Shown: positions 1-22,350 of the stretch, piece after piece
How positions within the stretch are numbered: the stretch's first letter is position 1
Layout: every line of letters begins with the position of its first letter
Assembly: GCA_016748015.1 (NCBI GenBank)
Contig: JAAOMT010000675.1
Coordinates: 248,001 to 312,000, forward strand
DNA from: Geosiphon pyriformis uo1
Lineage: Eukaryota > Fungi > Glomeromycota
DNA: 64,000 nucleotides
Direction of reading: 5' to 3'
Position numbers and translations under genes: made by a program
The notes under the pieces: generated by a model
What the model saw: only the letters and a program-made list of their open reading frames with translations
The model's database searches: none
What the model was told of the DNA's origin: nothing

Positions 1-3000
1 TATAAAAAAAAATTGACAATTTTTTTTTATAATTAACAAAAATATCATTTTAATCAAAGTTTTTATTATAAATATACTTTAATATTAAGTTTTTATTAAA
101 AATAATTGACTTTTTAAATCTAATGCAAATTTAAATTAAAAAACCCAAAAATTAAAGATTTTATACTAAAAACAACAGATTAAAGTATTTGTTATTTGTA
201 ATACTTTCAACAAATAATTTAAAAAAGTCTTTTTATTTGAATTTAAAAAAAAAAAAACTAATTATCAAAACTTATATGGCACTTAATTTTTAGTCTAATT
301 AGACTAAAAAAACAGAACAACAGTTATTTAAACAATTATAATCAATATTATAGTCCGAAAATTCAAATTAACAATTTATATTAGCAACAAACAATAAATA
401 AACCAATAATTGATATGTTTTATACTTAAAACTATAACCAAAAAAACACTTCACATATATTTTATTAAAATATAAAGATTACAATAAAAAGCTTTTATTT
501 ATAAAAGTTTATATTTTATCAAAAAAAAATACAAAACTTGTACTTATTATTATTTTAAAATTTATTACAAAAAATAATTTAACAGGTTTAAGCAAAATAA
601 AAAATAAAACAATATATCTTGTTTTATATATAGAGAACTACTACCAAAAAATACAATTAAATTAATATTGTTATGAAAAAAAGAGTCTGTAATTAGATTT
701 ATTAATATATTCTTTTTATTTTCAAAAAAATAAAATAAAAAACTTCATTTACAATAGCTTACAACAATACTTTTAATGAATTTTACTATTATCTATATAA
801 TGCTGAAATAATTTATAAATTAATAATAATTTTAATTAATAAAAAATTTAAGAAGATATTTATTAAATAAAAAAAGCAAAATATATTAAATATATTATAA
901 AATTAGTTAAATTTAATTATGAAAATAAAATTAAACTTTATTATCTAATTTTTAATCATGTTTATTTTCTAAAAAACTTAAATTCAATAATTAAAACAAA
1001 TAAATATTTAGTTTTATAAGAAATATATTATGTTTTATAATAATTAATAATATTTAAAATACTATGTTTTTAATATACTATTATTAATTAAAGATAATTA
1101 AAATAAAATTAAATTTAAATCACACAAAACACAATTAAAATTCCAATAATTTTAATTTACTTTACTAAAAACCAATTTGTTTTATAATTCAAATTTCTGT
1201 TGATAACAAAACTATGTTAAAATTTTAAAAATTTACAATTATAATATTTAAATTTTTAGAATTATTTAAGTTTTCTTATTATATCTAAAAATCAAATTTC
1301 TATTAATAATTTGGAATTAAACTTAACCATTTTACCAGTTATTATTACAAAAAACAATATTTTAACAACTATTTTTTTTTTAATTTAAATAAAATACAAA
1401 ACAAATTACTATTTAGTAAAACTGTCTTAAATATTAAAAGCTTATTATTATTATATATATTAATATTAAATTAATAAATATTTTATTAAACTAATTTTAA
1501 ACAGTAGTTTAACAGATAACATAATTATTAAACAACTTTTAAACCAATTAAGTTGTTAATATTTATTATTGTTAATAGATTTACTAAAATTTTTATTGAC
1601 AAAATAAAAACTTTTTTTAAAATTAATAGTATTGTTGTATTTATTAAAGTTTTTATTATAAAAGTTCTATAATATTAAATCCTTATTAAAAATAATTAAT
1701 TATTTAAAATTTATGTTATTTTTAACTAAAATATATAAAAATTTTAATTAAGTTATAATAAATATTATATTTAAATATTAGTAATTTGTAATTATTTTTA
1801 AATAATTACTATTATTAAATACTATTATTAAATTAAAAATAAAAAAGCTTATAATTAAAACTTATTAAGTTTTATAGATTAATAATTTTTATATAAACTT
1901 ATTATTACTATTTATTTAAAAAAACAAAAATAAAACAAAAATAAAACAAAAAAAACCAATTGTTAATATTTTTTCTTATATATTATCAAACCAAAAAAAC
2001 ATTTCTATATGTATTTATTAGTATAAAATTCCAAAAATCCAAATTATCAATAATTAATACATATTATATTAACTATAAAAAAGTTATTTTTAATAAAAAC
2101 ATATTATAATAATAATAAAAAATAACTTACTATTATCAAATATTATTGTTGATTTTGTGTTTTAAAATAATTAATTAACCAAAAAAACATAATAAATAAA
2201 ACAATAACTTATATTTTATTTATAATATTATTTTAAAATATAAAAATAAAATCTAATAAATAATCATAATCAAAATTAATAATATTATATTAATACAAAT
2301 TTTTATAATTAAAAATATTTTTTAAAAAAATCTTACTTTTTCTAAATAACTCAAAAATTTTTCATAAATATTATTAAGTATTAATACTAGTTAAAAAAAG
2401 CATAAACAAAAACTTATAAGTTTAAATATTAAATTATACAAGTATTATTATATTTTATATTAATTTAAATATTATAATAAGTATAATTTTGTTTACAATT
2501 TATTATTATATATTTTTATTTAATTTTTAAAATTAATAAACCAATTAATAAAAAAAAAAATTTAGAATTAAATTTAACCTTAATTTAAATAATATTTTTA
2601 AATCTGACAAAATTTAATTATTGTTTTTAATATTAAGCAATATATTATGCTTTTAAACTTATTAAAAAAGCAAAAACTAAAATAGTTTAGCAATAATAAC
2701 AAAAAAATTATGTTTAAAAAAGTCTATAATACAAATATTAAATTTAATTTAAAATATTTTAAGCAAATATTAATAATTTTAAAATTAACATTAAAAATTT
2801 TAACAATAATAATAATACAATTAATATTGAAATTTAGTTTACTAAAAAAAAATAATGCAAAAAAAAAATAATTAATATAAAAAATATAAAAAGTATTATT
2901 ATTATATTATAAATAATTTAAAAAAGTTTATAAAATTAAACCAAAAAAAATAACATAGACCATATTTTTGTTTTTAATTTAAATAACTTAATTAATTTAA

Positions 3001-3947
3001 TAAAAATAAATAAATTATAAATTATAATAAAAAAAATGAATAGATTTAAATTTATTAAAAAAGTAAATAGTAAATATAACAAAAAAAATTATTAACTAAA
3101 AAAAAATAATTTAATTAATTATATTATTTTTATTTTATTATATTGTTATTATTTATTAAAAATACTTAAAAAAATCAAAACTAGCTTTAGATTTTTAAGA
3201 CAAAGTTAGCAATATATTAAAATAGAGTTATTATTATTATTAATATATATATACTAACCAAAAACATTCAAATTTCAATTCAAAAATGATGTAAATTTTT
3301 TAATTAATATTATTATTAAATATTTAAGTTTAGAAATTGAAAAACAGTTATTATTATATGTTTTAAACTTTTTATAATTGTGTAAATATGTGAATTTTAC
3401 ATTATAAATTTAGATAAAAACTAAAGAATATTACTTGTTTTAAACAAAACAGTTAAAAAAAATGAATTTGGAAAACTTGAATTTATTTTAATAGATGTAA
3501 ATAAAAGTACTACTCAATTAATATGTTAATATTTTTGTTAGTAAAAATAAGTTTGAAAGAATCAATATTATTTAATATTAAATTAAAATTGAAAAAATTA
3601 TGCCAATAAAGCAAAAAACATATTAAGTATTATTAACAACCCATTGGGTTATTTGACAGAATTTTAATCAAATATTAGACAATAATTTAATTTAATTATT
3701 AATGAACTTATAATTATTATTATTTATATTAATACCAAAAAAAAGAAAAAATTCACTAGGTTATTAAAAACTTAATAATATTATTTATGGTAATAACTAT
3801 TCAATTTTACACAGTCAAGAATTGTTTAATTCTTTCAGTAAAAAGAAATAATTTTTCATATTAAACTTAAACAATTGACAAATAGTTATAAGTTTAACCA
3901 ATAAAAAAAAGATAGTCTTTCTTTTAATTTCAGAATTTAATGTTATT
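1..3947 (+). mobile_element. Heavily decayed Ty3/Gypsy LTR-retrotransposon internal region(s): protease-like segments, dUTPase ghost and 5' part of RT, truncated at the EFNVM motif
   Basis: Residual RT motifs at 3600-3947 (PIKQK..., ...ELFNSF..., ...KIVF...SEFNVI = KTAF...EFNVM). Reverting G>A/C>T at 2722-2760 gives the dUTPase motif AHDTDAGFDLRYP. Two similar protease-like blocks (~30-210 and ~1430-1800) suggest more than one copy. Confidence 0.7.
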
Positions 3948-3949
3948 AA

Positions 3950-5883
3950 TTACACAGCTAAAATCTGGCCTTTGTTTTCTATTTATATTTTTATTTAATT
4001 CCAAAGTATAGAATGTATATTCTCCACCAAAGATAATTTTTATAAATGGATCGAACTAATAAACATAGTACTTGTTCTCAGTTTGTTTTCATTTTAATAT
4101 CAACAGAAGTTTTTCTTTACTAAGAGAAAAAAAATATAATTTATTAATATTCCAATAGATAATTCTTTTGTTTTTAAAATTTTCTGTAATACTAATACAA
4201 TAGCTTAAATGTAGTTAAATATGCGTCTAGCTTTTTTGCCTAATTCACTATCATTATATAGTGTAAAATTATAATTCAATTCGGAAAAATTGTTGCTTTA
4301 TAAAAGGTTAAGAGTGAATCTGGTAAAATGAGTCATGTAATTTTATATGGATTCGAATTAAGTACTTGTCGCCATTCAAAACTTGTAAGGACAAGACCAG
4401 CACATTACAATTATTGATAATAGGGCCCTAAAATATAATAAAGAAATTAAATTTAGTACATTTTTACAACAGATATTTTTGAACACTTACAACAATTCGA
4501 ATGTGTTGTTCCATATTAATTTTATTTCTCTCCACCACTTGCTATTAATTGTCTTTGATACTCCTTAAATTTTCTCAACATGTTAAACGTGCCTACTTCC
4601 ACTAAAATGCAAAAATAATATTCAAAAACATAACTTAAATACAATAAATAGAGTCAAAAGTTCAGTTAATACTATATACTTCATTTAATGAACTGAGTAT
4701 TATTTGCTGTTCTAATTTTTCTAGATTATCATGTTTGATTTCTAATGTTTCATTGGAATCACTATTATTGGAATTATTATTTTTCTGATGAAATTGTCAT
4801 AGCAAAAGCGAAAAAATTCAACAAGGTTATTCAAGGTTATCTTAGTATAAATCCTTAATAATTACATTTGATTTGCCCATTTAATTACTTGAATATTCTT
4901 GAGTTGTAGTCTCATAATTAAGAGTATCAACTAGTTTACAACACATATGATATATTATTACAGAAATTCAACATAGTTTACAAAACTAAGCATAAAAGCA
5001 AGCTTAATTATTATATAGTCAATGCCAAAAAACCTCCATATAACTCCTGAGTTCTTTATCATTTTGTTTTATATCAATAGATTCTGCCTTACTCTCTTCC
5101 AAATCATTTGTTGCTTCTTCTTTCATCACTTTAGGTATCATTAAACACGGTTTTTTAAATATCTGTAGATTTAACTCATCAATGAGTTCATGATTTTGTT
5201 GCTGACGAATGACATTGAGCAACTCCAGCCTGTTAATTTGTGATTTGTGCTTGACAACAGTCTTAAGAGCTAACGAGTGAGAACAGGTATAATTAACGAA
5301 TTCCTATTCAAAATGTAAGATACCTTTTTATTTTCTAATTCAGTTTCTAGTTCTCTTTCCAGCTCAACAATTCCCCAAAAGTTCTTCACTTCAGGTCCTT
5401 TCTAAAAAATAGTGTGGAATTAGAGTTGATCAATACGATGAGATTGAACTGTCACCACAGAGGAACACATAAGGATTACATCCCACAAGCACTTCTACAA
5501 CAGACAAATGAAGTGTAAGGAACAACACCCACCACAAAGAGGAACTGAAGAGGAATGACACCCCTATAACACCCTTTGTTGGTTGCACATCATCACCTAT
5601 GACAGTTCAGAAAAATACAATATAAAATGTGACAGACCTGTTGTAAAAGAAATTCTACAAGTTCACATTGCTCCTTAATATGCTCATCTTGCTTCTCTTG
5701 TTTCTCTTCTTTAGTAAGAAAGTTCCTTAAAAACTCTAAATATTTCTTTCGTAATATAGCTCACTTGAGTTTGGATTTGAGACGCAGAAAGGTTTCAAAG
5801 TCTTTAAAAAAATCAAGATATGACCATTGTAAATACGTGTACTATCGAAATATGAATTGATCGCGAGATTTCAAGGAAGACAT
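3950..5883 (-). pseudogene. Spliced fungal pseudogene of a Glomeromycotina multicopy family (N-terminal YF...WSY.DF and EVKNFW motifs; possibly Crinkler-like)
   Basis: ATG at 5883 gives MSSLK/LAINSYFDSTRI/QWSYLDFFKDFETFL...LLQQ|GT. The next exon is KGPEVKNFWGIVELERELETELENKK|GT. A further canonical intron (GTAAGT...TACTAA...TAG) lies near 4490-4428. There are multiple 1-bp indels and stops, and it contains ORF 5019-5222. Confidence 0.55.
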
Positions 5884-5989
5884 CGTCAATTACAGATAAA
5901 TGTACGCAAAATTTTTTCACAAAGAAAAGACACGCATCACGAGGTATTAGTCAGAAGGTCGTACAATTAAATCATGCATGCAGAAGTTG

Positions 5990-7759
5990 TGATAACAATA
6001 AGTTTTGATCATAACTATTTTGAGAAAAGGTAATGCGTTTCTTGGATAGGTTGCAATTGTGGTTGTTCAAAAAAGATCCCAAAAGAAAAGTTTGCTGAAT
6101 TACATGAGGCATTTCAAGCTCTCTCTAGATCCGAACAAGATATATTTTTAATGGCCCAACTGAAAGCGGTGGAGTGATAACTGCCAGTCGACATCTTAAA
6201 AAGAAAACGAATAAAAGAACTTTTTACTATTGAGATCGCAAAACGCCTCTGTCAGAAAACGTATCTCAATATGTTGGAAATTGGTCGCACTCACTTCGAA
6301 AACGTCAGAAATCACCTAGCGGCGAATGGATAATACCGCGCGTTCATGGTAATGTAAAAAAAGTGCCGCGATGGAAAACCAAAATAACCATTGATATAAC
6401 CGTTGCTACCGTTATGAAGAATTTTCTCGAAAACTATGCTGAAATCCATGGATTACCAAGTCCTGGTAGAAACGTCAACCGAATTACTCAATCGCTTACA
6501 CTTTTGCCAGCCGAAACGAGCTACAAATCGGTCTATCGCGATTTTATTGCGAGCCTCGAAAATGATAGCACGTTGAAATTGTTAAAATATGATGCATTTC
6601 GCAAGTTATGGCACCAATTAACGCCTTATATTCAAATTATGAGTCCACGAACGGATTTTCCAACATTTTCGGAATGGTTTACAGTATAATGCTCGCAAGG
6701 AGAAGAAGAAGAAGAAGAAGAAGAAGAAGAAGAAGAAGAAGAAGCAAGAGACTTACTAAAAAGGTACAAAGAACATTTAGTTAAGGCTAAGTTGGAGAGA
6801 AATTATTACAACAAAAATACGAAATTAGCAGAACAACAGAGGAAATTGGTGGATGAGCATTTTAGAACAAGAGGTAAAGCTGATTATTGTAGCGTTGACG
6901 CTACTGCTCATTACAGTTACGATTGGGCACAAAACGTTCACGTACCCCATTCCGATCAACATGTAATTGAAATTTATTACCTCAGTCCGTGTAAAGTGCA
7001 TTTATTTGGTATACAAGATGAAGCAGTACGCGAACAAATTAATTATGTTCTCGATGAGGACGAAATTATCGGCAAAGGTCCTAATGGCACGCTGACCCTG
7101 GTATTCGATGGAATAAAGAAATTGAATAAAGGTGAAAAACATTTAAAAATTACTTGTGACAACGCGGGTGGTCAGAATAAAAATAATGCTACCATTTGAT
7201 TTTATCTATATTTAGTAATTTGCGGTTATTATGAAACTATTGAATTAAATTTTATGGTACCTGGACATACCAAATTTAAGTGTGATGGTAGTTTTGGATT
7301 GAATAAAAACTATATCGCAAAACAACGGTGGATTGCGTGAATCATATTGTTGAAGTTGTGAAAAAATCGAGTACAGCGGGATTAAACAAGGCTCAGCGTT
7401 ATGACAACGGAAAAGGTTTTCAATATTTAGATATCAATTCTGTTTTAGGAATTTTCTTTAAGAAATTGAATGGTATGCAAAAGTATCAGCATTTTCTTTT
7501 TGAAGCAGCTCATCCAGGAGTTGTCAAAGCTCAGCTAGTTGCTAGTGGTGCTTATGGCGAATTTAATCTGTTGAAAACTAGAAAAACAAGTGTTTCCGAA
7601 ATTACCAAAGAAATTAAATCCTTTTCAATCCTAGTACTAAACCCTCCTCCATTGGACTACAAACGCCAAAAGTATCTTGACAAAATTATTCGCCCATTTG
7701 TCAGAGATGAATTTAAAGACATTTCTTGTCCCAAGCCAGTACTAAATGTAATCAAGTAA
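5990..7759 (+). pseudogene. Sola-like (DUF7869-type) DDD transposase, frameshifted and intronless
   Basis: The joined frames give CNCGCSKKIP...LCQKTYLNML...PRVHGN...SPRTD...SYDWAQNVHVPH...KGPN...ITCDNAGGQNKNNATI(TGA)FY...FMVPGHTKFKCDGSFGL. The D(SYD)-D(CDN)-D(GHTKFKCD) triad and the GQNKN motif typify this family. It includes ORFs 6363-6689, 6792-7199 and 7328-7759. Confidence 0.8.
6702..6743 (+). repeat. (GAA)14 microsatellite inside the transposase (poly-Glu)
   Basis: Perfect GAA repeat read directly, in frame with the downstream ARDLLKRYKEHLVKAKLERNYY. Confidence 0.95.
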
Positions 7760-7869
7760 TTTATATATTAAACAAAAAAATGTTTAAATAAACTTTATTA
7801 ATCGTACTAACGTTAAATAACTAAAATAAGTAATGAGTGTTCTGTGACTAACAATCCAGTAAACTTCTA

Positions 7870-9458
7870 TTTTTTCTCGTTAATTAATAAGTAAGTGCTT
7901 AACATAATAACAATAGTAAAAACTGTTCCTAAGGATTCAATTAAATTGTTTTTCTCTATTTATTTGGGCTTCTAATCTAGTTAATTCTTCCTTTTTGCTT
8001 TGCAATTCTTGTTCGTGCAGAGGAGTTCCACCAACATTTTTAATTTCTCATTCTTTTTGTTCAATCTCACTTCGTAATTGGGAAATTATTTGCTCCTTTC
8101 CTCAGTTTTTTTCTCTTCATTCTCTCAATGCTTGTTCTTTATGTTTAAGATAGTCTTTATCACCTCTTCATTTTAAATAGTAAGCTTCAGGATCTCTTAA
8201 TTTTTCAGCTAATCTTTCGTTTTCCATAGTCCCAACAAATTTACCGGCTTTATTAAGTGGTCTTCCTTCCCCGTGGTTTTTGCCTCATCATTTTTGCAAA
8301 GTGAATTTGGGAAACAGCACAAGAGTAATATTATCCTCTTTTCACTCTTTTTCTAGTTGACCCAATTCTTTCGTTTTCTTTTTCATTCATTAACTTATTT
8401 TCTTTCCCTACTTGCAGGGAATATATAAAAATCGTGGCAATTAATTTCTTCTTCCATTTTCTGCATGAGTTCTTGTAATACTTCGCCAAATTCCTTTCAA
8501 ATTGAGGGTTCTAGTGATAAGAATTCGTCATTTGAAACACGTTGCTTTGATTCAATAGTAGTGTATCCAAAAGCTATTTCATTGTGTAATCTCGCAATCA
8601 CTTTGCTTTTTCCAGCAATAATATTATCTGCGGTGGGTTGCAAAACTTTTTCAGTTAACTCTACTTGCTCGGGAGTGGCTGGTTTATACTCTTTTGCTCA
8701 ACACTCATTTCCGTAACTTTCTTTGTATTTTGGAACTATACGAGCAAAAAAATGAGGAGAGTTTGACCAGCAAGGTTTCCTGTTGGTATAAAGCGGAAGC
8801 CTGCAGGATAGTAAACTTCGTCTATCTTTTTCATAGTATCCTTATATGCTTTTTGCTTGACATCACACAATGGGCTTTTGCATTGGGACGAATATTGGCA
8901 AAAGTAAAAAATCTTCCTCTAAGTCGGATACATAGCAATCATACAAACCCTTTTCGCGAAGGACTACACTGTCACAGCCAAGGCAGGCTTCTTTACAATC
9001 AGATTTGAGACAAGCATAATTAGGTGTATTGTCTAAATTAAAGGTAAAATGTGTGGATTGCTCGCCTTTTTCAATTTTGTTTGAACAATTAGTACACCAA
9101 GAACAAACATGGTGTTTACCGTCTTCATAGACACTAACATCTCAATGAAGATAGATTTTACATTGGGGGCAAGTGGCGACAATTCTGTCTCACTTTCATT
9201 GGTCATGCTCGTTTAACTGTTTTACTCTTCAAGGCCAATCACCACCCTCTTTATTCTTAAATTTTTCTAGAGCTTCTCTAAAAATTCTCTTTTTGTTCCT
9301 TTCTCTTTTGCACATTTATTTAGTTCTTGTTGAACCATATTTTGTGCGCAATCTCAACAACAAAATTTGTCAGTTCTTTCTTCGGTGTTAGGTACTGGAA
9401 CTGAAAAATTATTTCCTTCCTTTGTATTTTTACAATTAAAACATTCTTTTTTAGTCAT
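7870..9458 (-). pseudogene. Genetic-code-4 (TGA=Trp) bacterial-type gene, probably MRE-derived: Cys-rich Zn motifs, tandem HIT-like domains, coiled coil and C-terminal TM; broken by small indels
   Basis: Frames 9300-8842 (153 codons), 8760-8395 (122) and 8386-7880 (169) have no internal TAA/TAG but 5, 2 and 8 in-frame TGA. Motifs are CFNC...FCCWDC, CPQC, HIT-like FTFANIRPNAKAHCVMSSKKH and AGQT/PHFFARIVPKY, and a hydrophobic tail LGTVFTIVIMLSTYLLI. No introns. Confidence 0.75.
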
Positions 9459-9700
9459 GATTACTTATTAATATAGTAAGTTTTAAGCAATTAAAAAAAA
9501 AAGCAAACTACCTATTTAATACAAAAAAAAAACTTTTAATTCACAGTGAGAGTCCGAAACATTAATACTGTGTTTAGAAATCTCATTAATAAAGCTGACT
9601 AAATGGTAAAATTTTTTGTCCAGATATTTTTGTCTTTTGTTTTGTAATGGTACATCATTATCCTGCTTTCTTTCTTAATATTTATTATTTTTCGTTCTTC

Positions 9701-9871
9701 TTAGTAAATTTCATAAGTGATTTTTTCTTTCTGTAGATATTTCTCGAGAATTTTGGTGTCATTCATTTTAAAAACGTATGAAGCAATTTTTTCTTGTCCT
9801 TTTTTTAGAATGCTTTTAATTGTGCTGTAATTCTTTGGTTCCATAATCGATTTAATGTAAATTAGTTTCAT
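9701..9871 (-). CDS. Small intronless 56-aa ORF (MKLIYIKSIMEPKNYSTIKS...LEKYLQKEKITYEIY), co-oriented with the code-4 gene and probably part of the same insert
   Basis: ATG 9871 to TAA 9701. K/I/E-rich composition like the adjacent gene. It has no Trp codon, so its code cannot be tested, and the TAA may be a premature stop. Confidence 0.4.
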   Translation of the reverse strand: MKLIYIKSIMEPKNYSTIKSILKKGQEKIASYVFKMNDTKILEKYLQKEKITYEIY

Positions 9872-9984
9872 ATTTATATTTTAATATAGATATAATCCTA
9901 TATTAAGCATATTGTAATTCAAGTAAAAGTCTATCTTAATCATATAATAAAAATATTACAACCGGGATAATCAAAATGTAGTCA

Positions 9985-10262
9985 AATTAACTTACAGCCA
10001 CACCAGCTTCTTATTTATATCACATAATCAAATCTTTACTTTGTCTGGTTTTGTTGCAGCATGTCTCATTTCAAACTAGATTGGCATTAGTAAATGGCCA
10101 TTTTAAGACTTTGTATAACTTTTGTGGTAGTTTGGGAACTATTTATCCAAATACTGCTACAGTAGAATCTGACTTTTTCAATTCTTGGATGAAAAAAGAA
10201 TGAACATAGATTATCTTTAACAGATTTTTCACTTGAGGGTATTATGAATTATAAATAGTTTG
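9985..10262 (+). mobile_element. C-terminal fragment of a hAT-related DNA transposase
   Basis: Translates (one frameshift, stops) as LYNFCGSLGTIYPNTATVESDF/SILG*KKNEHRLSLTDFSLEGIM. This matches the P.TA.VE..FS......R..L hAT dimerization-like region. Confidence 0.65.
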
Positions 10263-10849
10263 AGATACTTTCTTATCTTATCTAATATCACTAATTGGCA
10301 CAAATTTTTATTAAACATTTTTTTAATAAATTAATTATCTTATTAAGTAATAAATATTAAGCTATATATAGTAAAATAAAAATATGCCAAAATTAACAAA
10401 ATTAAGAAGACCTGATTTAATGTAAATTTTAATTTAAATAAGACTTTTTAAAAATTCAAACTTAATTTGTTTATTAAATTAATAATTGATTAAAACAAGC
10501 TTAATGTAAATATTAAAACCAATTTTTCAAAATTAAATATTTTAGTAAAATAATTGTTTTTATATATTAAAACCAAAAAATATTTTTAAAATATATATAA
10601 TAATGAAAATAATATGAAAATTAGTTTTTTGTAAATAAAAATAAGTTTAAATATGTAATATTTTCTAATATTAATCTTAAAAATTGTAATAATGTTTTTT
10701 AATATAATTTAAATTAATGATTTTTATTTTATTTAATTAGTTGTACTATTTTCAATATAATAAAAAATAAAAAAATTCAATTTAAGTATTGTTAAATATA
10801 ATTTTTGCTATATAAAAATTTACTTAGACCGATTAGCCATTATTTGATA

Positions 10850-11800
10850 TTATCCAAAATTGTGTTCATAAAATTGGGGTTATCATGAATGCTGGATGCT
10901 TTGGTAAAAAAAAGCACTTAATAATTGTGATCGGTTTTTTAAGAGACAAATTACCTTTTGGATAATTAAAATTTCCTCTTCTGTTTCATTGAACTGAATC
11001 AAACTCTATATCAGAATACAATGGAAAACCTTCTCGAACGATCTGGAAACCAGCTTGAATTCCTCTTTCTTGGATAAGTCAGTCAAAGGACCAAGAAGCT
11101 GCTAGAGTATCAGAAAATTAACGAATCACTTGTCTGATCAAACTTTAACTCCAGACCAATCAAATTGGATTCGAATGCTAATGATGTAATTCGATCAGTT
11201 TTTGTTGTTTATCTTGCGTGATTAACTTTATGGAAGAAAAAAATAATCCAGCAAAGGATCCAATAGGAAGTTCAATGATGGGCTTCAAGATATTAGAGGG
11301 GAAAGAGGCTCATAAAAAGCCACGAACTCAGTCCTCCCCAGGGACTTCCATGACCCACATACTGTGCCACCTGTCGGCTTTACATACTCTATCGCCTTCT
11401 CAACCAGATTAACCATGGAGTGCGCTGACACCCTCTGTTGGCCACATGGATTCACCAACAATAAATAACGTTCCTGCAATTCCTTCTGTAACCTAGAGGC
11501 TTTGGCGTACGTGTATCTGAAAAGATTAGCTTGATGCATCTTAATTCCTCGGCCAAAGCTGTATGAAAGTTACGTCTAATGTCTGTTGCAAAAGGTGGCT
11601 GCTTTCCGATCCATTAAATATCGCCGTTAACGTTTCCCCATGCATTGGGGTTCTGGTTCCAGTAATCTGAGAACAATCAAGACGTTAAACTTGTATTTTT
11701 CATTATACTGTGAAACAATAATAAAAAAACTTACCCGGATACTGCAATTTTGCGCGATCCTCACTTGAAATGTGCTTTAGCTCGAAGAAACGAGAGCGCC
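10850..11800 (-). pseudogene. Spliced fungal pseudogene of another Glomeromycotina multicopy family (YW..P..WG...H.AL..EL N-terminus)
   Basis: An intron (GTAAGT...TCTCAG, ~11734-11667) joins FFELKHISSEDRAKLQYP|DYWNQNPNAWGNVNGDI*WIGK...FHTALAEELRCIK. It has stops and frameshifts, and the 3' part fades into AT-rich DNA. Confidence 0.5.
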
Positions 11801-16541: not shown

Positions 16542-19500
16542 GTTTTTTTTTGTTTAAAATTTAAATTGTAGAAAATAAAAAAACAAGTTTCACTGGGAAC
16601 ATGTATTAAAGGAAGAAAGAATATTGTGTTGATAATAAAAAAAGGAGGAAAGATTATAGATGAATAGAGTCCGGTTCAAATTTGGGGTGTTTCACTTTAT
16701 CTGTTTAAGTGAATCAAATGTACTCTTTGAAATAGAAAAAAATTGTTTCGCTGTTCGTCGTAAAGAATAATAAAATGAGACTTAAGTCTTCGTTTCCTTA
16801 ATTTCAATCAAATTAGCGTGTGTACCGAAAAAACCTAGAAATAACACACAGGGTGACAATAATTTTATTAAGGTGGAACAGTCAGAGTATTTGTGCTCTG
16901 TTGCTCTCACTAGCTCAACCCAATTATAAATTTTGTGGGTGTGTGAGTGATATATCATAATTCCAGCAAGAATCACTATATATATTGATATCGATAGCTA
17001 AGCCCTGAAAAGGAGAAGCAGCATAATACATGCAATAGTACAAGAGAAAGACTTGAAAAAAAATTACAATATTAAAAAAAATAAAATACGCGCGTATATC
17101 ATCAATCAGCATCAACAGCAAAATCATGATTAAGTTAGGTAAAACTAAAAGATGAAAGTACTAATTTTAATCATTTTAAAATAAATTGTTGGTAATATAA
17201 AGATGATTAGGAAGCTAAAAAAAGCAGGTGGGGTTTTTGTGTATTGGTTGTGCAAAGAAGCAAAACAGACATTAAAGTCACCAGATCAGGGAAGAGACGC
17301 AAGAGACACAGGTATGACATTACATGCAAGGAGTTATAATAGATTATAAGAGGCGTTCTAATTTTTGATACAATAAAAACAATCATCTTTTTTGTTTAGG
17401 TGAGGATAGACATGTCTTTTGGCTGAATTGAAGCAAAAGTTCGCAGAATGCCGCAAGGTTTGAATAAGGAGCTATGGATCCGAGGTGAGTGGATAGGTGG
17501 GCAAGCAGGCAGGGAGGGCGGCAAAAAAGTTTTAAAAGTATGGAGAAATCATAATGGTAAGTTTACCTTCATTCGGAGGGAGGGGCGTAGAGGGAAACGT
17601 AAGGATAAAAATACTTTTAGATGTCATAGTTGATCAAAAAATGGGAGAGGGTCAATGTTGTGGTTGATTCAAGGGATATACTTGTATGCGTCTGGATCGA
17701 TGAATCAATGACGAACAATGAAAGAATGAATAAACGGTTGTAAAGTTGTCTCACACAATTTTTTTTTTTGCGAGAAATATATTTTTCTTGCCATTTTTTA
17801 AAATTTTAGTAACTGCCGGGAATTCGTAATATATTAAGATTAAAATTATAAACTTTATACCTATACCCTTCCCTTTAGAGTCAAAGTTAGAGATTCAAAT
17901 TTGGGTACCAATCAAAATTCCCTCAGGCTGTACATATACCCAACCTTCAATGGCAAAACTATAGCAGGCGGGCAAAAAAGTAAAATGGGGGTGGGGTACA
18001 TATTGTACACATTGTTGCATCCCCAATGCTTTTATCCCTTTCTTTATTTCTTCTTTTCTATCTATCTCCAAATCTGTTGTAAAACTAAAACTTCACTAAT
18101 CGATGTGACAATAAAATTCTGCCACGGTTTTAATCGCTATTTGACTGTTGATATTCACTGGGAAAAAAGCTAAACTTTGTAAGCCAAACTTTTCAATAAA
18201 CATAAGGTTACACGCACACGACTTATTGTATTCAAGACGTCAATGTTTGAAAGGTTTCGATGAACCATTGTTTAAAATTGGCCCCAACTCGCAATTCTTT
18301 GGGGATTGAAAATGTTCCAACGCGAAATGCAAGTCAGCAAGAGGAAAAACTTGTTTAACAGTAAACATTGGGGATCAAATCAATGTGAAATCCCAAATAA
18401 TCGACCATTTATGGTATTTTAATTGTATTTCATTATAAGTGGACTTTTGAAGAAATACCAAGAAATTATTATAATTTGAAATGACAGCTTTCATTTCGAA
18501 TGGCTCATGAAAGAAAGCCTAATTTCGTTTTCTCGTCTCGGCCAACCGCTTATTTGATGAATATGGATCAAGCTAGCATTGATTGTGCATTAGGATAGGT
18601 ACAACAGAATCAGGCAGCACTAAGTATGGTTATCAAAGGTTGGAAATGGAAATCAAAAAGTCGATCTATATCAAAAATGCGGGGAAAAGACTGAATAATC
18701 TTCATGAGCCAAAAGTCTCTCCTTTTTGTTGATAACAGTCGCCCATCCAAAAACATTTACTCAACGATTCCTTGTAACAGTGAATGTGATAACTTTTAAG
18801 AATCACTTATTTCTTTTCATTATGCTATAGATAAAATTTGCTCTGTACTGGCGAAGAGCAAAGTGCATTGAATGACTTCTTTTTTGTAACCTGTGTGGAG
18901 AAATTTTCCTTTTTGGAAATTGGTTCAAAAAACCTACTGGACTTTTTCAAGTTTTTTTCAACCTGTCTAAATCATAGTTTAAATAAATTATTGTCAAAAA
19001 TTTTTGTCTGTGCATATTATTATCCAATCCTGAAAAACTGATAAAATCTTATTCATTGGCTTTTGTACTGCTATTGTTCAATTAATTAACTCAAAAATTG
19101 TGACAAACAATAGCTTTTATTATTTCCAGAATTTTCTTTAGTAAACAATCACGCAAGATGATTTCTATTGATCTAGATTTTATATTTTAAAAACTTGATC
19201 TATTTCAAATTTCATTGAAATTTCTTGATTGCTTTCGAATAATAATTATATATCAAAATTATTAATTATTTTGAATTTTTTTTTTCAAAAGCTTGCATTT
19301 TTTAATTTAATAAAATAATTTGAACTTAATCATTAAAATATTTTATAATCTATTTTAATATTGATATTTATTAGCAATTTATTAGTTTTTTAATATTTAT
19401 TGTATTAATAAAAAATAGGTATTTAAATAAATTCACAAAATTAAAATAATTACTTAATATTATTTATCAAAGTTTATTTTAATTCTTATTATTTGTTTTA

Positions 19501-22350
19501 ATAATTAATAAAATTATTATTTATTTATTAAAAAATATATAAAATATATTAATATTAAATTAATATTTGTTTTTGCTAATAAAAAAGTTGTTACAATTTA
19601 AAAATTATTAAATAAAATAAAAAATAAAAATACATAATAATATATATATATATATATTATTTTATAAAACTTTAAATTATAAAATAAATATTATATAATA
19701 AATAATAAATAATATTAATATTAAACCTTTTTTTAAATTTTATAAATTTTATATTTATAAACAAAGCAAAAAAACAATTGTTATTTTTATAATATAACTA
19801 AAAAAAATTATAATTAAAAAGTTTTCTTAATAATAAAAGTATTTTTTTAATTAAAGATTATTTTTTAATTAAAATTATAAAAAATACACCAAAAACAATT
19901 TTAGTATTATCATAATTATTATTAAAATTTTAAAAATTTTTATCAACAAATTATTAATAAAATTATTGTTATTTTTTAATTATTATTTTTTAATAACTTT
20001 TATTATTAACTTTAATAATAAATTATTATTTTTTAAATACAAGTTTTGTGTTTTTTAAAAATATAAATTTATTATTATTATTTTATTAATTTAATTTAGA
20101 TAACAACAATTATAATATATTTGGTTATATTGTTTAATAAATTATTTTTATTAAAAAAACAAAGCAAATTATATTTTAACATAAATTTTTATTTTAAAAA
20201 TTTAAATTAATATCATAAAAATCAAAGTAATATATTTTTTTTAACCAAATAATTTTTATTTTAATATTGCTTTTTTAAATTATTATTTTTTATTATTTTA
20301 TTATGATATAACTTAATTATTTATTATAATTTAAATTTAAAAATCTTATAATTATAATTTATATATTTTTACATATATTAATTATATAAATTAATTAAAA
20401 TTATAAACTTAAAATTTAAGACTAATTTGTTAAAAAAATTTTGAATTAAGACTTTATATTATTTTTTTTATATAATTAAAGTTTTTTGAGCAAATATAAA
20501 TTAAAAATAAAATTGTATTAATATTAATCTTTTCAGATATTTCTAATATTATTGATTATTTATTTAATTATTGTAAATTGTAAATTAAACTTCAAAAAAT
20601 TTATTACAGTTTTCTGTTAAGTTAAAAATTAATTTAGTAAACAATTTTTTAACTAAATTAATAAAAATTTTATTAAATTGTAATATTATTATTATAAATA
20701 ATTTATTTAGTATATTTTATTTTGGTTAAAAATAGTTTAATATCAAATATTTAAGTATTTTTTTTATATTATATTATAAATTATTTTTAAAAAAAATTTG
20801 ATATGATATTTGGTAATTAATTTTTTTTTTTTTTTTATTAATATTTAACGAATGAGACCCAAATGCCATTTATTATTAAACATAATTATATTTTTAATTA
20901 AAAAATATTTTGTTATTAAAAAAGTTAGATATAAAAGATTTTGTATTTTATTGATTTAAAATTATTGTTAATTTTTTTCAAATTAATAGTTTATATATGG
21001 TTGTTTTTATTGTTATTTAAAGTTTTTATTATTAAAATATTTATGATTTAAACTGTTTTTTTGTAATTAAAAAGTGTTTAATAAAAACAGATTTAAATTT
21101 TATTAATATTTTTATAAATAATTATTTAAAATGAAAAAATTATTATTTACAGTTTTAGTTATTAATAAGTTGATTTTTTTAACTTAAATTAAGCATAATT
21201 TTAATAAAACACTAACATAAAATTCCAAAATTAAACAAAAAATTTGTTTTTAAATAGTAATCTAATTAATAAAAATTAATTAGTTATTTTAAAAATTTTG
21301 TAAATATAATAAATTAAATTATTGTTTATAATAATTATAATACTAAAATCCAAGTAATTAGAATTTAATTTAAAAATAAATTTTTTTATATTATTAAACT
21401 TATTTTTAATTCAAAATTTGATCTGATTTTTTAATTTTGTTTTTGTAATAATAAAAACCAAATTGTTTATATTTTTATATTACATATAACAATTTTTATA
21501 CTAAATTAATTATTGAAAAAAAATATATTTACATTGCTTTTAAAAAATATTTTATTTAATTTTAGTATAATTATAATAATAAAGTTTAAAAGCTTAAAAA
21601 TATTTATTTTAAAACTATTTAATTAAATAATAATATAAACAAAAACACTAAAATTTGCAAATAATACATTAATAATTTTTTTAAAAGAAATTATTTAAAA
21701 TTATTTTAGAATTAAGAATTAGATTTACAAAAAAAGCAGTATTTTCAAAAAAAAACAACAAAAAAATATATTTAATTTATTAAGTATTAGTAAAAATTGA
21801 TTAAAAAAAACTTTTAATTTTTTTAACTTGTTTAATTATAAAATTGTTAATAAAAACATTATTAAAAATATTTTTTTAATATAAAGTGTTGTTAAATAAA
21901 ATAAATTATTCTTTACAAATATTTATTTATAAAACTTTTAGATAAAAGTTTACATTTTAACTTAAAATAACCAAAATATTTACATTTTTTATAATAAATT
22001 TAATTTAATTTTGTTTAAAAAAAATTTATATTATTACTAATAGAAATTAAATTATTAATTAGCATAAAATTATTCTTATAATTTTTATTATTAATTAATA
22101 TATATTATTATTTCAATTTATTACTTAATATTTTATTAAATTATTAAATATTATTATCTAATTAATAATTTAATTTGTATAATATACAAATATTAAATAT
22201 AATAATTAAATTATATAATATCTTAAATTATATAATACTTAAAAATATTTAAAATTTTAATAAAATATTTAATATTTTACCAAAATAATTTATAAAAATA
22301 AAAATAATTTATAATTTACCAAAATATATGTTTAGTTTATTAAAATATTA

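Follow-up and report, generated by a model that had tools for sequence, protein, structure and literature searches.

Why does a fungal chromosome carry genes that stay open only if TGA is read as tryptophan? The question is raised by a stretch of 64,000 nucleotides from Geosiphon pyriformis (contig JAAOMT010000675.1, positions 248,001 to 312,000; hereafter the window), in which an earlier note had marked 7870-9930 as genetic-code-4 DNA and read it as an integrated fragment of a Mollicutes-related endobacterium (MRE). We find that the unit actually spans 6024-10067 and is a dead, 5'-truncated and decayed copy of a Sola2-like (Pfam DUF7869) transposon with terminal inverted repeats (TIRs). The window copy is a nuclear insertion from a family whose transposase and right-arm cargo are written in code 4 and which is probably maintained in Mollicutes-related endobacteria.

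The code signal comes from four minus-strand frames (9458-9264, 9300-8842, 8760-8395 and 8386-7880). These contain 1+5+2+8 = 16 TGA codons and 2 TGG, which reproduces the earlier tally exactly, and TAA or TAG occurs at the frame ends only. From base composition, 11.4, 8.1, 7.0 and 4.5 TAA/TAG codons are expected in the four frames, and shuffles free of both numbered 1, 3, 9 and 154 of 20,000. The standard-code open reading frames (ORFs) of the window (gypsy ORFs of 1003 and 485 amino acids, and another of 685 amino acids) have 0 in-frame TGA. The TGA-only pattern is thus rare in shuffles and absent from the other long ORFs of the window, and so the signal is both real and local. Further TGA-only open frames at 10.1-19.5 kb were rejected as non-coding in appearance.

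The four frames lie within a repeated unit, the copies of which were counted in the Geosiphon pyriformis assembly (128 Mb, 792 contigs). The transposase region (6024-7731) has at least 47 genome copies, with homology beginning exactly at 6024, the terminal repeat (9675-10070) has at least 56, and the passenger region has about 8 copies at the DNA level and at least 14 at the protein level. Element copies sit on Mb-size contigs and their internal order is the same. In complete copies the terminal-repeat segment recurs, inverted, at the opposite end; five such copies have inverted terminal repeats of 280-430 nt, in elements of 5.3-6.8 kb. The terminus GGGGCRKR-CTGCAACAAAACCAGACAAAGT is common to 40+ ends, including that of the window, where the right terminal repeat region (9675-10067) has its outer end at 10067 and the minus strand reads GAGACATG CTGCAACAAAACCAGACAAAGT. 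Directly outside this terminus, at 10068-10071, is AAAT (minus strand), a putative AWWT-type target-site copy. Nearly all termini are bordered by ATAT, AAAT, ATTT or AATT, beyond which the flanks are unrelated, and in one element (L034) AATT flanks both ends. Sola2 elements have 4-bp AWWT target duplications (PMC3627910). As ATAT hardly varies in the Geosiphon family and is a palindrome, and as an empty site was not found, a duplication is not distinguishable from a terminal tetranucleotide; the Sola label rests on this flank pattern, the likeness to Sola2 being one of description and not of comparison with the Repbase Sola2 references.

The window copy is without its left arm and left repeat. 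Homology to every other copy begins at 6024, and a simple inverted-repeat search of the window gave no left end for the element. Its 5'-truncated transposase pseudogene (6024-7756, plus strand; Sola2-like DUF7869) is frameshifted, with open pieces at 6129-6686, 6690-7382 and 7307-7756, and its Trp codons are both TGG and TGA. The DUF7869 score is 47.9 bits for this copy and up to 66 bits for intact copies, read through one TGA. Three acidic positions of the transposase are conserved between Geosiphon, Rhizophagus, Gigaspora and an endobacterial copy described below. The window transposase also carries a GAA/GAG expansion of about 15 Glu codons at ~6692-6753, where other copies have KEEEAKD and read contigs break.

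Alignment with four other copies (L010, L011, L012 and L013) shows that the minus-strand frames, previously taken for two co-oriented genes, belong to a single gene of about 558 codons (7880-9458, minus strand), which we call passenger gene B and which is split in the window into 9458-9270, 9300-8845, 8760-8398 and 8386-7883. The erosion by small indels that had been proposed for the segment is borne out: at least nine indels break the gene in the window, namely 1-nt indels near 9303, 8919, 8762, 8422 and 8377, and deletions of 3 nt near 8788 and of about 55 nt (8844), 22 nt (8358) and 11 nt (7932). In L013, the most divergent copy (65% DNA identity), passenger B is a single 558-codon frame (5982-4309) with 19 TGA, 0 TGG and 1 TAA.

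That TGA stands for tryptophan in these genes, as had also been claimed, is apparent from the comparison of copies, in which TGA codons align to Trp and TGA and TGG are interchanged. Of the transposase's five conserved Trp sites, three vary between TGA and TGG from copy to copy, and the TGA columns of passenger B pair with TGA, TGG or aromatic codons. P0319, a soil homologue of passenger B from a standard-code gene call, has W where L010 and L013 have TGA. Moreover, in a second cargo family, 'A', the motifs CDWDEC and LLWE are spelled with TGG in L026 and with TGA in L017. In heavily AT-mutated copies, for example L012, TGA has turned into TAA.

Among intact Geosiphon copies of the transposase, differences at the three codon positions are 13/12/73 and the ratio of non-synonymous to synonymous substitution (dN/dS) is 0.058-0.074 at dS 0.29-0.67; for divergent copies of passenger B it is 0.13-0.34. 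Both the transposase and the passenger genes have evolved under purifying selection with TGA read as Trp. Ratios involving the window copy are higher (0.16-0.22 for the transposase against intact copies; 0.54 for passenger B against L010), as would be expected from neutral decay after insertion. The two parts of the window element differ in their divergence from L010: the passenger (7860-9480) is 91% identical (dS 0.22) and the adjoining transposase (6024-7731) only ~84% (dS 0.67), which suggests that cargo modules may be swapped between element backbones by recombination. As it stands the segment could not be translated in the fungal cytosol, and on this point we agree with the earlier note. 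Promoter and terminator scans of 7700-9700 returned nothing exceeding shuffles.

The insertion resides in nuclear DNA. Its flanks are unique fungal DNA, with no bacterial housekeeping gene attached and no co-transferred bacterial neighbour genes at the window element. Both junctions of the element (6024 and 10067) are bridged by Logan contigs of run X1, which cover 5500-6074 and 9853-10900 with 0 mismatches; the run is from the same organism and its contigs were assembled apart from the published genome, although it is possibly the assembly's own sample and so not fully independent. Word depth in X1 is 70-150 in the flanks, 114-298 in the passenger, 1700-3300 in the transposase and 1100-1450 in the terminal repeat. 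Passenger depth is hence close to that of the flanks, and the values fit a nuclear insert with a low-copy passenger within a high-copy family. The assembly yielded no bacterial 16S gene, a bacterial small-subunit (SSU) model matching only 18S-like sequences (<=536 bits) and fragments on a single contig, C703; no endobacterial contig for comparison is thus present in it. In an 84-kb JGI contig, an element is likewise set between fungal genes (HLH/DUF2014 and Ctm1).

The candidate home of the code is indicated by a relative of the transposase in bacterial chromosomes. P0313 is annotated in two metagenome-assembled genomes (MAGs) of Candidatus Moeniiplasma glomeromycotorum, where it sits on contigs of 125 kb and is bordered by type III and type I restriction-modification genes. 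This transposase (P0313/L119) is nearly full length, has TGA at aligned conserved Trp sites and, at about 50% identity, forms a sister clade; in the bacterial genes nearby, about 76% of Trp codons are TGA. A complete TIR-bounded element belonging to the clade of the MAG copy is found on a soil contig (L098), amid TGA-rich genes (a GmrSD-like start, an HVO_A0114 winged helix-turn-helix gene and a leucine-rich repeat (LRR)-HET gene with 7 TGA) which we take to be endobacterial chromosome. Since the sister clade is in Moeniiplasma chromosomes, the strongest candidate for the code-4 host is an endobacterium related to the Mollicutes. The idea of an integrated MRE fragment thus survives as regards the likely code-4 host, but not as regards the nature of the insert, which is cargo of a multi-copy transposon and not a one-off piece of chromosome. 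The search for homologues is similarly divided, with the sister clade in Candidatus Moeniiplasma but the deeper transposase relatives being fungal and animal nuclear transposons. The Moeniiplasma contig L119 also carries, at 18911-20941, an LRR and protein-kinase gene with 16 TGA and 5 TGG; eukaryote-like and fully code-4-adapted, it shows the effect of long bacterial residence on Trp codons.

By a quick LG+G4 tree, the code-4 sequences are monophyletic (SH-aLRT 94) to the exclusion of the standard-code sequences of Gigaspora and animals. Clade I consists of the MAG copy together with four contigs from soil and one from Ambispora. Clade II (support 99) comprises all Geosiphon copies, 44 soil contigs and a fungal-context contig, the Geosiphon copies being interspersed among soil sequences. 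The nearest transposase relatives outside the code-4 clade are Gigaspora, Rhizophagus and animal sequences, all in the standard code. More distant relatives (Rhizophagus clarus, Gigaspora margarita and animals) have no TGA at aligned Trp positions, and TGG where the residue is kept.

The family is not confined to Geosiphon. A profile-free search of 1.8 billion proteins returned 3223 relatives, among which every sequence above ~55% identity is a short fragment, the sources being Geosiphon, Ambispora leptoticha and metagenomes; fragments are what would be expected where gene callers stop at TGA. A named search added Diversispora eburnea and Gigaspora rosea. Scanning metagenomes gave 103 soil contigs with transposases 55-97% identical, of which ~40 are near full length with 2-5 TGA each, mostly without any other stop, and on two soil contigs passenger B adjoins the transposase. 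Pieces at least 90% identical to the element occur in soil and rhizosphere runs X2-X20, from 17 studies. In these runs the depth summed across transposase and terminal repeat is high, though Geosiphon itself is rare, and near-identical elements must therefore live in commoner hosts.

The remainder of the element is variable, and its two arms are written differently. Right-arm cargo in clade II spells 85-100% of its Trp codons as TGA and the transposase about 60%. Passenger B can be replaced at the same position by other TGA=Trp cargo (L017:5449-6378, L024:6641-7678, L026:5723-6700; L027:6315-7922), with 5-10 TGA in each gene. Family 'A' (MNNQN…, tail-anchored) and a family 'C', made up of a coiled-coil gene and a Cys-rich gene, recur on soil contigs. 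The left arms contain eukaryote-type genes, including Crinkler and kinase genes (L017:1386-3096, L019:4355-5725, L066:6756-8927, L069:390-2696, L121:6313-8322 and L122:7715-9345), which share only 25-55% identity from element to element, against 70-85% for the transposases of the same elements. Three further observations concern genes at or near elements. A clade I soil contig (L035) encodes, with TGA=Trp, a small HExxH (SprT-like) protein (2929-3495) and a protein of 819 codons that faintly matches Lon_C (3630-6086). ORFs upstream of two elements (L066:2-799 and L039:3-911) start MDLLP…(F/A)(S/A)GTDPG…, resembling the first RuvC motif of TnpB/Fanzor, proteins that are known passengers of Sola2 (PMC3627910). 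Finally, L013:970-6198 is a complete TIR-bounded element of about 5.2 kb, with ATAT at both ends, which has passenger B without a recognisable transposase and so may well be non-autonomous; on the right it is flanked by a non-LTR retroelement (RNase H and reverse transcriptase motifs).

Passenger B opens with CxxC-rich zinc-ribbon motifs, followed by a HIT domain in the centre and a coiled coil, and closes with a hydrophobic helix (…ISLGTVFTIVIMLSIYLLI); with such an ending the protein would be tail-anchored. The HIT domain is seen through the soil homologue P0319, which is 81% identical to the passenger B piece of L108, scores 38.4 bits against PF01230 (cut-off 21.5) and matches PDB 6af2 (E 1.8e-9), as well as the Ap4A phosphorylase 3ano. 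The nearest ESM Atlas clusters are bacterial HIT families. Pfam and NCBIfam gave no significant family for the TGA-free pieces of the window copy, L010, L013 and L108, the pieces having been searched separately. The histidine triad is degenerate, H-F-Y-M-R standing opposite H-L-H-V-H of 6af2, and H-F-F-A-R in the window lineage. Because the nucleophilic middle His is absent, we read passenger B as an accessory binding protein, one with a HIT fold that is probably not a HIT hydrolase. Our guess is that, at the bacterial membrane, it may bind nucleotides or DNA ends. The central domain matches the HIT superfamily (PF01230: Hint, Fhit, Ap4A phosphorylase) in sequence, and the joining of HIT to Cys-rich zinc-binding motifs recalls aprataxin, a HIT and zinc-finger DNA-end enzyme, in architecture only. 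Unlike the HIT enzymes, passenger B lacks the nucleophilic His and extends into a long coiled coil and, at its C terminus, a membrane anchor.

How did such a family come to be in the nucleus? The simplest history is one of entry into endobacteria, recoding and repeated return. A fungal Sola2-like transposon would have entered endobacteria and been recoded there under AT pressure, and its descendants would have gone back to fungal nuclei many times. Selection keeps the family intact somewhere that TGA is Trp, most likely in endobacteria, where the active copies of clade II would also reside; copies landing in nuclear DNA are unreadable to the host and decay.

A number of observations weigh against this history. 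Integration with precise ends in the nucleus requires transposase there, and it is not obvious how a protein made in a bacterium would provide it. Of about 100 Trp codons in the left-arm genes of clade II (Crinkler, kinase and others), none is TGA; part of each element thus behaves like standard-code DNA, these genes being either recent nuclear captures or kept readable for the fungus. The MAG copy of the transposase is frameshifted once and is without recognisable TIRs or cargo. For clade II, no endobacterial context was found, the flanks being only fungal or uninformative (metagenome flanks are short), and two pattern scans based on the transposase alignment turned up no relative among 185,579 bacterial and archaeal genomes. 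Nor was an endobacterial homologue of passenger B found, in searches blind to full-length code-4 proteins, and no RNA runs were found to hold the stretch. A bolder arrangement, which we put forward tentatively, would accommodate both scripts: a shuttle transposon in two languages, with a TGA=Trp transposase and right cargo expressed solely in the endobacterium, a left arm of standard-code fungal genes free of TGA, and exact-ended nuclear insertion by the element, or by transposase that escapes from wall-less cytoplasmic bacteria. If true, the shuttle would be a standing vehicle for two-way DNA traffic between symbiont and nucleus in many mycorrhizal fungi of the world's soils.

The transposon could instead be purely nuclear, with the fungus decoding TGA as Trp through a suppressor tRNA, context-dependent read-through or other recoding. 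Clade II contexts are only nuclear or uninformative; complete copies with precise ends and AWWT flanks lie in nuclear DNA, in dozens and in several lineages mixed with soil sequences; the left-arm genes are standard-code and eukaryotic; and the transposase has merely 2-5 TGA. We nonetheless regard a purely nuclear transposon as rather improbable. The 19 TGA in 558 codons of passenger B and the 5-10 in other cargo are beyond leaky read-through, host and gypsy ORFs shun in-frame TGA, and no tRNA gene, hence no suppressor, was found in the window or in 11 element copies. The sister clade lies in real endobacterial chromosomes and has the same code, and a host able to read TGA as Trp would leave no reason for its complete avoidance in the left arms. 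The nuclear copies could instead derive from a code-4 reservoir elsewhere, such as an endobacterial plasmid or phage, a different Mollicute or an unknown code-4 microbe of mycorrhizal fungi. Such a source would suit the absence of clade II from those endobacterial genomes that could be reached and the abundance of close matches (at least 90% identity) in metagenomes of soil and rhizosphere, where contigs are short and hosts unknown. It is distinctly doubtful, however, as positive evidence for any other code-4 host was not encountered, and both code-4 contexts that did come to light have an endobacterial look, their LRR-HET and LRR-kinase genes being of host origin and recoded to TGA.

Fungal mitochondria use code 4 and mitochondrion-to-nucleus transfer is common, and so an origin in mitochondrial DNA or a mitochondrial plasmid, in the manner of nuclear mitochondrial insertions (NUMTs), comes readily to mind. 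We consider it very unlikely, given that the unit is a 5-7-kb TIR transposon with at least 47 copies in several diverged lineages, that its relatives lie between bacterial restriction-modification genes, and that passenger depth matches the nuclear flanks and not an organelle. Moreover, no found copy is on C703, the sole contig with fragmentary bacterial-type SSU matches and only a candidate for mitochondrial DNA. A one-off integration of endobacterial chromosome, an assembly chimera or a contaminant would have the code-4 signal itself in its favour, but is scarcely credible for a segment that is repeated with its neighbours on many Mb-size contigs with order kept, terminates in the terminal repeat of its family and has no bacterial housekeeping gene attached, in an assembly without a bacterial 16S gene; the X1 contigs, too, cross both junctions without mismatch and at a depth matching the flanks.

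Dead as the window copy is, the family from which it comes is of interest. Gene flow between Glomeromycotina and their MRE has been described mostly as host-to-bacterium and as a matter of single genes. Here a eukaryote-type transposon family is written in a bacterial code, selected in that code and present as dozens of exact-ended copies in fungal chromosomes, which makes it a concrete and testable vehicle for DNA movement between kingdoms. Within the library searched, no paper was found on a recoded transposon family of this kind in fungal nuclei. The per-gene ratio of TGA to TGG provides a built-in marker of residence time by compartment. There are consequences for annotation as well: gene callers fragment TGA=Trp genes or invent introns, and screens for endobacterial 'contamination' may wrongly drop nuclear DNA or wrongly retain bacterial DNA.

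The closest known systems are the Sola2 DNA transposons of the Sola superfamily (Bao et al. 2009; Bao and Jurka 2013, PMC3627910). The Geosiphon family resembles them in being of cut-and-paste type with TIRs and 4-nt AT-rich AWWT flanks (ATAT, AAAT, ATTT), in the three conserved acidic residues of its transposase (YD-W-AQN, CDN, KCDG), a putative DDD core, and in carrying variable cargo at one end, as in Sola2-Fanzor chimeras. It differs from Sola2 in that its transposase and right-arm cargo are in TGA=Trp code within a standard-code nuclear genome, in its long terminal repeats (280-430 nt) and in having a sister clade in a bacterial chromosome.

As an insert, the window copy resembles Wolbachia insertions and NUMTs, being DNA for another translation system that lies dead and decaying in a host chromosome. 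Unlike these, the Geosiphon family is no set of random fragments: it is a mobile element whose ends are exact and whose copies run to dozens in several lineages, and it is found in other host species and in soils too. Mollicutes-related endobacteria and Glomeromycotina reportedly exchange genes (Naito 2015; Torres-Cortes 2015), and it is this pair of host and endobacterium that the Geosiphon family concerns. The difference from known transfers between them is that the transposase of the family goes back in the end to a eukaryotic type, implying a round trip.

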